Source: Pavona decussata
Taxonomy: Eukaryota
Direction: 5' to 3'
Length of the DNA: 64,000 bases
NCBI GenBank assembly: GCA_977016875.1
Contig: CDRNST010000010.1
Coordinates: 3,286,001-3,350,000, forward strand
The notes beneath the pieces are model-generated. The model searched no databases and had not been told where the DNA came from. It was given only the letters and a program-made list of their open reading frames with translations. Each line of letters begins with the position of its first letter. The first letter of the stretch is position 1. The position numbers and the translations under genes are program-made. Of this stretch, positions 57,071-64,000 are shown in pieces.

Positions 57071-57995
57071 AACGAAATACATGAATGAATTGAACAATTT
57101 CATTCAAATTTACTTCAGTTCTGTTCAGCAGAGGAGACCATATATAATATTCTGTCCCAAAATTATTGGCTTATAACTACGCTTTACTTTAATCTTACCT
57201 TGGCAGCAGCGGGAAAATGCCATCAAAACACACACCAAGCAGAGTCTGAAGATACGAGTAGACAATATGTGGAGAATTGTTACGGTGAAATAAAAAACAA
57301 GTCTTCCTTTCGTTGCAAAGCGGAAGAGAGTTCTGAGATTGAATTAGCGGGAACAAAACCGACGTGTTTGAATAAATTAATTCTGCGAACTTTTTCTTGT
57401 TTGCAAATTCAAAGGCTTCTGCTCTGTGTTTGTGACATTTTGTCTGATGTCTCCCCGCTGTATATTGAAATCAAGAGAGGAAAATAAACGGAAAACATTG
57501 TCCATGAAACATCTGTAAATTTCAATCTTTGAAAATGAAGCGAAAAATTTGGATCTGCATTTATTCTGAAAATAGATTATTTAAGCTCCGTTCTGACCTT
57601 TCTGTGAGTAAACGTCAAGTTGTCAGTTGGAGGAAATTGAAAGATATATATGAATAAACATAAACTATTTAACAACTGACAAATAGTGTAAAAGAAATGT
57701 TTTATTAGTGAGCACCTTTTAATCCATAATTCAAGCGAGAAGCGGTTTTGTTGTGATGAAGAGGGAACGGAATGGGACAAAAAGGCTGCTGGCCGCTCGA
57801 TTGCCGACGCAAATTTCCCTTTCGTAAACGGTCGTTGCCATTTGAAACGGTCGATGCCATTTCTCACAACGGTCATTGCCATTGAAAACGGTTGATACCA
57901 TTTCGAAAACTAGCCGAGCAGACGACAGCCCTCGTGAATAGCTCGTACGCGGTTGGCACGCTCGGACGTCACTTCCGGGCAGTGTTGTAATCAAG

Positions 57996-59280
57996 ATGGT
58001 GGAGCAATCCACGTGCGCGAGAGTTGAGCCAGCTGAACCAGAAGCAACCCATTCTTCTTGTGCAGAAACAAAACAAAAATCAATTAAGAAGCCAACGGGG
58101 TGGAACTCCTTTATGCAGTCAGTTGCGGTGAGTTTGTTTTGTATTTCCCGAAATATTCAATCATTTTCAGCCTGGATAAAGTGCTTGTTCATCCTTTACA
58201 TCCGATTAAATATCAGTGAAAAATAAACCGCATGTAAAATTTTCGTTTATGTCATTAACAAATATGTTATCTTTAAGTGTTGCACTTATATTCGTTATTC
58301 TTGTGGGCCTTGAAGTTACATTCGATATAAGCTGATATAGTTTCCTCGTTCGTTGTTTCATTCCCCAGCCAGATGTCAAGGAACAACTTGGAAAGGGGGC
58401 AGGAATCGGGCAGGTTTCCAAAGTGGTTGGCAATATGTGGAAGAAATTGCCGACAGACAGACGAAAGGTTAGTTATAAACTTCTAACATTGCGAGTGTTT
58501 GTGTATTAACCCTGCCCCATTTCAGTGGACTGCTATGTGGTTTACATGGCTAACTTTGTAAGGACCGAGAGTGTAAATGTTCTCGTCAAACCTTCAAATT
58601 AAAAGTATTTTAGGTTATGAGCGTTGATCTTGAATCAAGCTGGGACCTCAAGCTGAATGTCAATTTTGTAATATAATGTTCAGACTTGTTATTTTTCCAG
58701 AAAGAACTGTAAAATATACCTAGGGCATGGCCCATTATAATGTACCAATTAATTTACCCTAAATTTTAATTAGAAATAACTTACATGTGGCGGATCCAGG
58801 TTTTGAGGAAAGGGGGGAGGGGGGAGGGGGGGTGGGGGCAAGGGGGTATTATCCTCAAAAAATTATGATAGAGGGTGAAAAAAAACTGTCTTTGCAGTCT
58901 AGTTTATATAAAAATAGGGGGGATCATAAATACACGATTGTTCCCTAATATATTCACCCTTTTAAAATATCATGCTATGATATTCATAGGACTGGAAAGA
59001 TAAGGCACAGAGCTTGAGGGAAGACCTTGATATGGGAATAGCAGAGATAAAAACATGTCCAACCTGCAGCACCCAGTTCACAAGGGAGAAGGACTTTAAA
59101 TACCACCAGGAAGGTTGTCATGAGTGCATTTGCGAGGAATAAAATGAATCGTTTGACCATGAGCAAAAGCAAAAAAGGCATAAAGACAAGAAACATAAAG
59201 ACAGCTACAAGTGTGATCATTGTCAAAAGACTTTTGCTGAGAAACGAAATCTTATAAGACACCAAAAGTCACATGTTTAG
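57996..59280 (+). pseudogene. MULE-borne spliced HMG-box plus three zinc-finger gene with one nonsense codon
   Basis: Exons 57996-58127, 58369-58467 and 58990-59280 (phase 0) give KKPTGWNSFMQSVA|PDVKEQL..IGQVSKVVGNMWKKLPTDRRK|DWKDKAQSLRE then CPTC..H..C, CEE*..RH..H and CDHC..RHQKSH; TAA at 59140-59142. Confidence 0.75.
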
Positions 59281-59378
59281 TTAACCTATCCTACATTTAG
59301 TGATTTTAATTGGAGATGGTTTGAAAGGACTATTGGATCAATCTATAATACATAATTGTTTTTGTTTTTAAATTATTA

Positions 59379-59380
<2 letters not shown>

Positions 59381-59416
<36 letters not shown>

Positions 59417-59424
59417 ATTATTAT
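59381..59424. repeat. (ATT)n microsatellite
   Basis: About 12-14 units, slightly imperfect. Confidence 0.85.
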
Positions 59425-59699
59425 CGATTTTTGAAATTAATTGTGGTCATTGCAGCACATGTACGTCATGTTACTGTTCAAACCAAATTTTAAATCATTA
59501 CAAATGTTGTGTTAGACTTTAACAGGAAAAATGAATTAAAACTTATTTACAATGTCCAAACCTCAATCTTTTTAATAACCTTGTTGTTCAGGGACAGATC
59601 AAAGGAGAGAAGTTTTTAATCTAGGCAATTTGCCTTGAGTGAATTTCCCTCTATGTTACACATTATGCGAACATTCCATTGTTTATTCACTAAGATTTC

Positions 59700-62524
59700 T
59701 CTGTTTTCCTATTTTTTCCTTTGCATGTGCTTGGTCTTGGATTTCATAGTATGGGATCCAGACTTCTTACTACTTTTAGTGTTTGTTTGTACTGCTTTAG
59801 CCAAGTCATGGCTGTGCTTCCTCTTGGAGGTGGGTTCTTGAGATTGTACTGGTCGGCCCTTTGATACAACCTGACGGCTTCCACTACCACACTTTCGTTT
59901 TCTGTTGGGCTGTACTCAGATCTATTTTCCATTTCCGGTTTTTTTCACCTCACTGGACCCAAAAGTAAAAAGAGCGCTTGCCAAATTAGAATGCATAGAT
60001 CTAGCAGCGGTTAAGGATGTTACCCTTTTTGCGAACCTGATTACACCTTTAGCCAAATTAAGGTCTCTTGAGCTTTGGAGCTTTTGAATTATTTGTTCAC
60101 AAGAGTTTCTCAACAATTGTTCAGCATTTGCAATGGAATCATCCTCATCATCATCATTGCTCTGTATTGGTTCAGCAGTGCAGCAGTTTGGCCCTTGTTG
60201 TGCTGTTTCCACACTAGTGGATGCCTCTGTTACAAAAACATTAGAACCATCAGTTTGTGATGTTTGTCCAGCATCACTAGAGCGTAATGGCTTATAACAA
60301 GCAACAGGAATTGTCTTTCCTATTGCTAGCCAGGCCAATTTTTGTTTTTCAATCTGTAATATATACATTCTAGACCTTCAACTGGTTGATCCACTAAGAT
60401 ATTAATGGAAATATTCCTAACAGCAGAGTAAGGGCTTGCTCTTACTCTGCTATAAAAAACTCAATAACCTGCCAAGAAGGGAAATTACTAAAGGTACCCC
60501 ACCCCCTGGACAATATATTACTCTTGTTTTGGTCTTCCTTATGCTAAATCAACATCCTTGAAATGCAGCATATGGATGAACTGCAGGAATTATCTCATAT
60601 GTTATGCATGTTATGTCCCAATGTTCTATGTATTTTTGCCCCAAAGGGGAGGAGCCTAGAAACACTGCCCCCTCCCCCCCTCCTTCCCCTATCAAGATAA
60701 TTTGAATCAGACGATGGGGAGAAAGATAGGAAAATAATGCCCACCCACACATGCCCTCTTGTACCACCAGAGCGTTATGCTATTGTGACGGCAAAGAAAA
60801 AACACTACTGACCTGTGACTGCTCTCTGAAGAGCTTCCAACTTTGAATACATTATTGCCAAAGTTCTCTACAGTTGAGATGTAGGCATCAAGATCTTTTT
60901 TATCTGGGACTTTAAACCCTGTGCTTCCGTCTTTCCCTTTCCCAAAGAATCGATGTCTGTACACGCCATCAAAACTCCCATCAGCAATACTAAGGAGCTT
61001 ATTCTTGTAGTGATCTTCTAGATAAATAGTCAGGTTGTCTAGAAGCCCAACAACATTGTACTCTTTGGTGCGCTCCAGAATTACATCCTTAAGAACCAAA
61101 AACTGAGCCTCGGCAAAATTGTTGGTGTGGTTCCCTCTAACAGGCAGTTCAGTTCTAAAGCATAGAGCAAACGATTCTTTGTCATTGTATAGATTTTGCA
61201 AGTAGCTGACTAGATTTGGGTATTTCTTGCAACGGCCATCATTCAAAAGTTCACTGAAGTAGTTCTCAAAATCTTGTTTTGTCTCGGCATAAAGGGTGAG
61301 AAAATAGGGTCTATCTGCTTGGCTGATACTGTTCTTGCTCTCGTGAAGCCATCTCCAAAGTTGTTGGAGCATGTGGAAGATGCAAAGAAGTAAAACAGAT
61401 GTTAGCCAAACAGACTTCAGAGCATTTCTTTCCTCTTTACACAGTTGTCTGTTAGGATGACTTGAGGGCCTTGTTCCCGACCTGTTTAAGTGTACGCTCC
61501 TGCTCATCACTGGTGATCAAGATGCCAAGTGGAAGTGCTCCAGATACATTGTTTGTGCACATTAAAAACACTTTAAGATTGTGCTCTTCTGTATTAGAAG
61601 TAGCATCAACAAAAACCATCTCACCAGACTGCTGCACTTCCTTGTGTACACGGGTCATGAGAGGCGTTACAATAGTAATTATAAGAGGCGTATCATCACC
61701 TTCATACATCTGGTAACAAGCAGTAGCTTCAGGGTTGTCTTTCTTGTACTGTTGAAGCCTTTCGGAAAGTCTTTCAAACATCATAACGCCCTGTCTACCA
61801 TACCTATCCTTACCAAATTGCGTGTAGAGGTAACTAAAGTCCCTTTTTCTCGGCATAACTGCCCGATTGGCCTTTTTCCTGTGAAATTCCGATTCATCCT
61901 GACATGATTCTTTGAGTTCTTTTAAGCACTGTCGCCTTGCGGTTGCTGGTGTATGCCCACTTTCAAACAACTTCAAAACCCTTTTTGTGCACTCAGAAGA
62001 AAGGTCACAGAAATTAGAGGCCTCCAGAGTTTCAAGTGAATGGTTGTGTTCCCACTCTATGTCCACAGAACAACATCCCTCGCTGTCTATTTTGACTATC
62101 ATCTGAAAGGGGCAATTGGTGTTCTTTACTCTGGCAGATGGGTTCAAGTACAATTTCTGCTGTGGATCTTTACTTGGACTCCAGTTGCGAGTGTTGTGTT
62201 GGCATCTATAGTAGTTTTGCAACACATAGCCGCTTGTTGGTACCTTCTTTGTCTTTCACTTCACTGAGATGCTGTTTATCGCTTCATATTCGGATATCCA
62301 CTGCTCCAGGTTTTCTTTCGTTATATCTTCAGTCAAAAAGTGCACTTTGAACTTTTCTCCATTTCCTGAAATTGGCTTCAGGTAGTAAAATGAATCATCT
62401 GGCAGCGAAGCCAGAAACCTCTCCTTTGTAATTTCGGTCGATTCAAAAGATTTACTTTTCGATTCGACTTCTTTATAGCTGAAGATATTAGATCTTTGAG
62501 AAAATTGTCGGGTTTGTCCGCCAT
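59700..62524 (-). pseudogene. Decayed MULE transposase
   Basis: YYRCQH..CPFQM..HNH, VFVDAT...GALPLGILITSDE, (frameshifted) ILTDNC..ERNAL, LCIFHMLQQLWRWL and RGNHTNNFAEAQF motifs spread over several frames. Confidence 0.85.
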
Positions 62525-64000
62525 TTTTATTTGATAAAAATCGCGATGGTTTGTAGGAAAGCTAGTCACGCATTGCTCTGATTGTCACGCATGTCGTCGG
62601 AGAGAGTCGGAAATATCGGTTCCTTTTTGGCATCGACCTTTACGATGGCATCGACCGTTTCAAATGGCAACGACCGTTGTGAGAAATGACATCGACCATT
62701 CCAAATGGCAACGACCGTTTACGAAAGGGAAATTTGCATTGCCGACGCTCCCTTGGGTTCGGGACTTCCTTCTCGAGAAGGGACGGACAAAAAGGAGGGC
62801 GGGCTCGTACCCCGAACAGCGGTTGGTAATCGAGCAAGTTTGGCCTTGCTTCTCATATTTTGGGGACGACGTGAAACCTGCTGACAAAATAAGCCAACCA
62901 CAGGTACAAGTGCTGTCAATGGATATTTCTTGTACGTCATTTTTAAAGTTAAGGACACACGAAGTCGAGGAGGCCTTGAACATTGCCACGTTGGTATTCC
63001 GCCTGTTGGTTCCTGTTACAAAGTAACACCCGTTACATAAATGTGGACCCAATCTGTAATGACCACAACGGCAAAAGAAACTCCAGCATTCCGTATTAAT
63101 AACACGCTTTATTGAAAGAACGACAAACGAAAACTGCCTCCAAATGAAGCGGCGAAGAAACTGCTAAGCAGCGTAGCGATGAAGTGAGGCGGTGAAGTGA
63201 AGCGAAGCGGTTAAAACTAGAACAAACAAGCAAACAAAACGTCACAAAATGAACTAGCGCAAATAGATGGCGCGAAGGAAAAACCGACACTTACATTTGT
63301 TGCGGAGCTGGGCAAACCAAAGTAACTGGAAAAAACCGACTGTCCTAAATCGTATAGCCGACGAACAAACTTTGTAGGTTGACTAACTGCTCTCGCGGTG
63401 AAGAGATATACTAACACTAAAACGTCCAAAAATTCTATATAAACTGCCAAAACTTGTGAACAAAAATGTGAATAAATAACACTAAATCACACAACTACAA
63501 ATACCGCACGCACGAGATATAGACAAGAACATTCCTACAAAAAATAACACAATAACCTAAATGACTACGCGTTTAGTTCTTACACCGGCCCCTAAGTGTT
63601 GAAACACGGGCGAAAACACTTACAAATATTATTATAAACTAAACGACCCTAAAAAAAAAAGACTTGTACATTGTAAGATAGCGATAGCTAAATAAAGCTA
63701 GCGACGCGAGACTAACTTGGGTAATAACGCAAAAGAAACACGCGGCGGGACTACACGCGTGTGAATAAATCGCAAACTACCCGAAAACCAGTACAAGAAA
63801 ATGTTTATTTCTATTTCAATTACGTGTCCGGTTGTAATCTGTAGTAAGCTCTCGCTGAAATCCTTAAAGTTCATATCACACAGGGTCTTCTCTTTCAACA
63901 ATGAGACAAAGCTTGTCAACTGGTCTTTCAAGAATGCCAGATTTAATCTTTACTTTCGTCGCTCGACGAACCAGGCCTTTGCTGTCCGGAAACACTTCGA

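Follow-up and report, generated by a model that had tools for sequence, protein, structure and literature searches.

The function of the second gene has been obscure in Mutator elements ever since mudrB. Host HMGB1 is a DNA-bending cofactor of RAG1/2 and of Sleeping Beauty. The TnpA protein of En/Spm and the Myb-like protein of Harbinger are encoded by the elements themselves, bind subterminal repeats and aid the transposase, and these elements need both of their genes. To our knowledge, MURB has neither an HMG box nor zinc fingers and is confined to Zea. The mudrB gene is needed for a late step by a mechanism that is unexplained (general knowledge and PMC6446971). The second ORFs described in Mutator-like elements (MULEs) include mudrB, mutB, vanB, vanC, a C2H2 ORF in Spectre and a RING ORF in Ghost, with no mention of an HMG box (Dupeyron et al. 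2019, PMC6446971). VANC, from the Arabidopsis element VANDAL21/Hiun, is encoded by an extra MULE ORF and is a sequence-specific binder of the element's own non-coding repeats (PMC6446971). A search of the searchable literature, Repbase being outside it, returned no description of an HMG-box ORF in MULEs or in other DNA transposons.

We analyzed a 64,000-nt stretch of genomic DNA from Pavona decussata (hereafter the window), which contains a dead copy of a stony-coral two-gene Mutator-like transposon. We show that the second, accessory gene of this transposon belongs integrally to the MULE lineage, being inherited vertically with it, transcribed and kept under selection, and that it is not a captured host fragment. 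Its product combines an HMG box with three zinc fingers.

The element, its ends and its transposase

The element occupies positions 57809-62737 of the window (4.9 kb), in eukaryotic DNA of ~39% G+C, and has ends of ~95 nt built of 19-22-nt subrepeats. The termini were placed at 57809 (GCAAATTTCCC...) and 62737 by alignment with sister copies. An inverted repeat pairs 57809-57901 with 62645-62737, the 93-nt arms being 91% complementary. The left terminal inverted repeat (TIR; 57809-57903, plus strand), delimited from inverted and direct repeats and from alignment of both ends, consists of the terminus GCAAATTTCCC followed by four subrepeats of the type ACGGTCGWTGCCAT at a spacing of 19-22 nt. 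The right TIR (62628-62737, minus strand), delimited from direct repeats, the inverted repeat (91% complementary over 93 nt) and end alignment, has five subrepeats. The element is flanked by the 9-mer ATTGCCGAC at 57800-57808 and again at 62738-62746. Perfect 9-bp target duplications were found around the window copy and around 10 other copies, each with its own 9-mer. The family thus shows a PF10551 domain, a 9-bp duplication, the typical length within the 8-11 bp range of MULEs, and long TIRs; the TIRs, the duplication and the broken MULE transposase together identify the window element as a decayed MULE.

The transposase gene lies on the minus strand and starts at 62524, 213 bp inside the right terminus. 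Its first exon (60905-62524, minus strand) encodes the MULE catalytic domain and is split by frameshifts over three reading frames in the window. The last exon (59712-60350, minus strand), located by tblastn and blastn against the sister copy L034 and from the ORF list, encodes the region after the SWIM finger; here an internal stop shortens it, and its first 53 codons have been lost through a 193-nt deletion at ~60337-60341. The window transposase region is 93% identical to that of L034 but frameshifted, and it was the L034 ORF, which is open, that matched the Pfam MULE profile PF10551 (E 7e-12; 46.1 bits, cut-off 27.6). A SWIM zinc finger commonly, though not universally, follows the MULE catalytic domain. 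In the next exon of L034 the SWIM profile PF04434 scored below its cut-off (E 0.079); the CxC...CxH pattern is present in the ORFs of L034 and of the metagenome contig L074, and database relatives of the transposase carry PF04434. Relatives of the transposase occur in Nematostella (83% identical) and Branchiostoma (57-63%). In its N-terminal region the transposase also matches RRM_1 weakly (residues 61-101 of L034 3640-5334, minus strand; E 8e-4, 19.6 bits, cut-off 20.7). Between the 3'-ends of the two genes lies an (ATT)n microsatellite (59366-59431, a direct repeat), and the RNA contigs stop just short of it.

The target duplications of ~15 independent insertions (the window duplications and those of L031-L044, L069 and L073) yielded the palindromic consensus GTCGSCGAC, each position being conserved at 65-85% in DNA of ~39% G+C. 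This target specificity is unusually sharp for a MULE. The half-site GTCG of the consensus recurs in every end subrepeat. Subfamilies whose UTRs can no longer be aligned still show ~80% conservation of the terminus and subrepeats, which are looser but recognizable in a lineage whose accessory protein is 42% identical. RNA contigs up to ~590 deep cover just the outer ~50 nt of the TIR (57813-57859), beyond which they continue as unrelated sequence; other transcripts probably contain many short derivative elements with the same terminus.

A second gene with an HMG box and three zinc fingers

The initial annotation had proposed that three phase-0 exons at the left end are spliced into a sequence encoding an HMG box and three zinc fingers, with one cysteine position replaced by TAA, and that this gene begins just inside the left TIR and faces the transposase as in mudrA/mudrB. 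Each of these points was borne out. Exon 1 (57996-58127, plus strand; 44 codons) encodes the N-terminal tail and the first HMG-box helix, and its donor GTGAGT is kept in all copies. Intron 1 (58128-58368, plus strand) measures 241 nt here and 267-275 nt elsewhere, has GT..AG ends in all copies and occurs at the same position and phase in the diverged copy L073. Exon 2 (58369-58467, plus strand; 33 codons, acceptor CAG, donor GTTAGT) encodes the loop and the second HMG-box helix. It is followed by intron 2 (58468-58989, plus strand; 522 nt, GT..AG), which contains a G-rich run (58805-58840) that recurs in inverted orientation within the transposase region, at 60665-60686. Exon 3 (58990-59280, plus strand; 96 codons and the stop, acceptor TAG) supplies the third HMG helix, one C2HC and two C2H2 fingers and the termination codon. 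All three exons are in phase 0, each being translated separately.

We searched the window exons one by one and let database proteins, chiefly P0082, stand in for the spliced product. P0082 (Porites harrisoni KAM7436075.1, 173 aa) was retrieved in two steps: exon 3 of an open copy served as query for a word search, and one of the proteins found, P0077, for a second search. This independently annotated protein agrees with the exon translations: over the full length of the window exon pieces, 166 of 172 residues are identical, including 41 of 44 residues of exon 1 (P0082 residues 1-44) and all 33 of exon 2 (residues 45-77). The sole in-frame stop in the window exons, TAA at 59140-59142 in exon 3, stands at the second cysteine ligand of finger 2. 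This codon specifies cysteine in all ten of the other readable copies, and the RNA contigs agree, reading G and C at 59141-59142.

From the left terminus at 57809 it is 187 bp inward to the accessory start codon, which comes 93 bp after the last subrepeat. Since the two genes start near opposite ends on opposite strands (187 bp and 213 bp inside, respectively), they are convergent. The presumed promoter and 5' UTR of the accessory gene (57904-57995, plus strand) are not conserved between subfamilies; the RNA contigs begin at 57876, the edge of the repeats, so the true transcript start is not fixed by them.

A Pfam search had been suggested as a check on the HMG box; we took the gathering thresholds of HMG_box (PF00505) and HMG_box_2 (PF09011) as the criterion. 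Searched singly, the window exons reached at best 16.2 bits for HMG_box, and exon 2 alone matched profile positions 28-48 of 69 in the correct register (E 0.014). P0082, the equivalent of the joined window exons, passed both curated thresholds (HMG_box 29.4 bits, cut-off 25.4; HMG_box_2 26.8 bits, cut-off 22.4) as well as that of zf-C2H2. Both HMG profiles also exceeded their cut-offs in P0259, P0263, P0084 and P0105, and in P0086 and P0085, which are frameshifted downstream of the HMG box; P0194 passed HMG_box only. Species with members above the thresholds include those of Stylophora and Pocillopora as well as Aplysia. Amphioxus and Nematostella members fell just under the HMG_box cut-off (P0089, 25.3 bits; P0077, 23.8 bits). 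On exon 3 of an open copy zf-C2H2 matched three stretches (E 1.8e-11). Across 10 family members the zinc ligands and the aromatic residues of the HMG core are invariant or nearly so.

Among solved sequences, the closest to the HMG box are HMGB3 and box B of HMGB1, with E-values of 5e-5 to 4e-4 and with HMGB1 chains from RAG complexes among the matches; next come SSRP1, TOX, HMG-D and NHP6A, and SOX-type boxes are last. AlphaFold models place helices at residues 35-51, 57-70 and 73-91 (pLDDT 75-86), and three beta-beta-alpha fingers after them. When whole proteins were used in structure searches, the finger arrays dominated and the HMG matches were weak (VIA, Z ~4), no better than those to unrelated helical proteins. 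We also searched the PDB with Foldseek using the HMG-only model of a naturally finger-less family member, and all of the top 50 matches were HMG boxes. TM-scores rose to 0.75; for SSRP1 the TM was 0.71 and the rmsd 2.6 (65 columns), and for HMGB1 in RAG the rmsd was 1.9 (53 columns). The E-values of this search were only 0.03-1, in line with the small size of the domain.

One further protein with the same module is P0105 of Aplysia californica (XP_005111139.1, 380 aa), which carries the HMG-plus-fingers module at its C-terminus and scores higher on HMG_box than any other family member (34.3 bits). Its N-terminal 200 residues have no Pfam matches. P0105 may represent a cellular relative or a domesticated copy, or its gene model may be a fusion.

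Splicing was examined with contigs of four coral RNA-seq runs aligned to 57800-59500. A 983-nt contig of the polyA run X13 skips exactly 58468-58989, with GT..AG ends, which is intron 2 as modelled. None of the aligned full-length genomic copies has lost this stretch, which places the origin of the joint in RNA. Every contig of the four runs that covers intron 1 still contains it. Its removal, which would yield the full HMG box, is indicated indirectly by the gene models, by the conserved splice sites, position and phase, by the continuity of the box, and by the contrast between the metagenome contigs L071 and L074. These two contigs are near-identical and part exactly at the homologous intron-1 junction, where in one of them exon 1 abuts exon 2 and in the other stands unrelated sequence ending in a pyrimidine run and AG.

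Three proteins from ORF callers (P0087, P0088 and P0099) read straight through intron 1, which in several copies is 267 nt long, a multiple of three, and nearly open. We considered whether this read-through is a genuine coding variant and rejected the idea: every copy of the genome has at least one stop there, and we therefore attribute the read-through to chance and to ORF-caller ascertainment. A separate RNA contig skips 58493-58843, within intron 2, with ends GA..GG that are not splice-like; some copies may be without this segment.

Distribution, linkage and selection

The gene region is present in at least 12 copies that are 92-95% identical in the 602-Mb genome, and the accessory gene is found in every full-length copy of the element. 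In two copies (L032 and L035) all three accessory exons are open. Two further subfamilies of the same genome, known from coordinates, identities and open frames, carry the same pair of genes in convergent orientation. In subfamily C83 the transposase is 66-73% and accessory exons 1-3 are 58-60% identical to those of the main family, the transposase running rightwards from one end and exons 1-3 leftwards from the other. In subfamily C49 the corresponding values are 64% for the transposase and 53% for accessory exon 2. The metagenome contig L074 encodes an accessory protein that is 42% identical, followed by the last transposase exon, convergent and 29% identical. Linkage with the transposase, which the initial annotation had asked to be tested, thus extends from all full-length copies through C83 and C49 to the 42% lineage.

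At the protein level, homologues with an HMG box and three fingers occur in Nematostella (66% identical) and, in multiple copies, in several amphioxus (Branchiostoma) species (55-60%). These are the same taxa in which relatives of the transposase were found. In two Branchiostoma belcheri gene models (P0103 and P0100) the HMG/finger module is joined to transposon-like sequence unrelated to it, such as the DDE-type N-terminus of P0103; nested elements have probably been predicted here as chimeric genes. At more than 90% identity, accessory proteins are present in Porites, Stylophora, Pocillopora and Oculina (P0082, P0259, P0263, P0270 and P0075), which represent both deep stony-coral clades. Together with the 83% identity of the Nematostella transposase, this level of identity suggests horizontal transfer or unusually slow change, with contamination as a further possibility.

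The possibility that the gene is a fragment captured from the host by a single copy, as in a Pack-MULE, had been named as what would overturn the initial reading. The element departs from a Pack-MULE in that its transposase is present and its accessory gene is complete and common to all full-length copies and to diverged lineages. A whole-genome search for a host parent gene with exon 2 returned MULE copies alone, from which we conclude that this genome holds no such parent. Outside the family, exon 3 found generic fingers only, at 35% identity or less. Viral and prokaryotic genome contigs scanned with the family alignment gave no match.

Selection on the gene was assessed by comparing the main family with L073, a copy of a 58% subfamily. 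Summed exon by exon, pN was 0.30 and pS 0.85, the latter being saturated (Fisher's exact p = 9e-24); identity was 0.59-0.76 at codon positions 1 and 2 and ~0.40 at position 3. The expectation of a dN/dS below 1 therefore held between subfamilies. Within the main family, singleton and shared variants were equally dense in exons and introns and codon-position bias was absent, a neutral pattern that is expected because inserted copies are dead and that adds nothing to the case for selection. With pN far below pS, and with the zinc ligands and HMG core conserved, the accessory gene is under purifying selection along active lineages. Two comparisons were dropped: C218, considered as a diverged copy (86%), proved to consist of 5'-truncated copies of the same family, useless for dN/dS, and intron identity between subfamilies taken from a global alignment was unreliable.

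Possible roles of the accessory protein and comparison with known systems

We infer, with a probability of about 0.5, that the element encodes the accessory protein as an architectural cofactor, which would bind DNA at the end subrepeats. In this role the three fingers would anchor the protein to the conserved 14-nt subrepeats at both ends, and the HMG box would bend the end DNA, helping the transposase to pair the ends and to assemble the complex for cleavage and integration. The protein would then be a built-in counterpart of host HMGB1, as used by RAG and Sleeping Beauty, and of TnpA or the Harbinger Myb-like protein; it may also help to read the target GTCGSCGAC. The situation in MuDR, where the transposase itself reads the subrepeats, counts against a cofactor of this kind. 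A broader and more tentative proposal, which we regard as doubtful, is that an ancient MULE lineage of cnidarians and amphioxus obligatorily encodes a site-specific DNA bender, with an HMGB-type box and with fingers on the subrepeats and possibly on the target. If true, this would be the first eukaryotic cut-and-paste transposon with its own HMG subunit of the transpososome, a subunit that RAG and Sleeping Beauty borrow from the host.

The main rival to a cofactor is a regulator of the element: a sequence-specific DNA binder that might activate the element's own promoters or counter silencing in the manner of VANC, or else a repressor of copy number. Both genes start beside the subrepeat-bearing ends, which probably serve as promoters; HMG-plus-finger proteins are typically transcription factors and are named so in public annotations; and MULE second or third ORFs with anti-silencing or unknown roles exist (PMC6446971). 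The conservation and selection described above would fit any function useful to the element. However, the HMG box is closest to the non-sequence-specific architectural class of HMGB, SSRP1 and HMG-D rather than to SOX or LEF, and the protein has just 173 residues and no recognizable effector domain. We consider a regulator rather unlikely. It is less probable still that the accessory protein acts as a target selector, guiding integration to GTCGSCGAC rather than working at the ends. The consensus is shared by ~15 insertions in DNA of ~39% G+C, its GTCG half-site occurs in all subrepeats, and three fingers could read ~9 bp, but target choice in cut-and-paste transposition is normally set by the transposase, and the data fit equally well a transposase that reads both ends and target. 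Reading of the target by the accessory protein would also be compatible with the cofactor model.

An old capture of a host gene that has no role for the element, and is conserved through host benefit or hitch-hiking, appears very improbable. Gene capture by MULEs is well known (PMC6446971), and the Aplysia protein P0105, with the same module, implies that a cellular relative or ancestor may exist. Against this, the gene is whole, having a start, introns and a stop of its own, its position and orientation are constant in lineages down to 42% identity, and its parental gene was not found in this genome. Purifying selection is strong along the element lineages while individual copies decay neutrally, which argues that the gene is needed for propagation of the element and not by the host.

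The cofactor reading, if correct, would mean that an element can itself supply the HMG-type bending that RAG and Sleeping Beauty are known to need. MULEs with second ORFs were already known, but in the searchable literature we could find no description of a MULE second gene that combines an HMG box with three fingers. This second gene of corals has readable domains, candidate sites and a sharp target motif, making its role directly testable with two small proteins and short DNA sites. Such proteins are annotated in corals, the sea anemone and amphioxus as 'zinc finger protein 260-like', 'sdz-12-like' or 'GDNF-inducible zinc finger protein 1-like', and should be recognized as transposon genes.

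Among known systems, maize MuDR shares with the coral element the MULE domain, 9-bp duplications, long TIRs and two convergent genes that start beside opposite ends. The coral accessory gene differs in spanning cnidarians to amphioxus, and MURB is set apart by its description. Spectre, Ghost and Mutyl likewise have a small second ORF, with a C2H2 domain, a RING finger and the DNA-binding mutB, respectively (PMC6446971); they too are set apart by description, no HMG box being reported in them, and conservation across phyla, selection and linkage have been shown only for the coral gene. VANC differs from the proposed cofactor in acting in anti-silencing and not in transposition, in having a fold unrelated to it and in being restricted to plants. 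TnpA and the Harbinger Myb-like protein belong to other superfamilies, use other DNA-binding folds and have no homology to the coral protein. With HMGB1 the likeness lies in the HMG box, that of the coral protein being most similar to HMGB box B, and in the proposed job, which is likewise the bending of ends with spaced sites. HMGB1, however, comes from the host, has two boxes and an acidic tail and lacks sequence specificity, whereas the coral accessory protein is the element's own product and joins a single box to three fingers that could confer site specificity.
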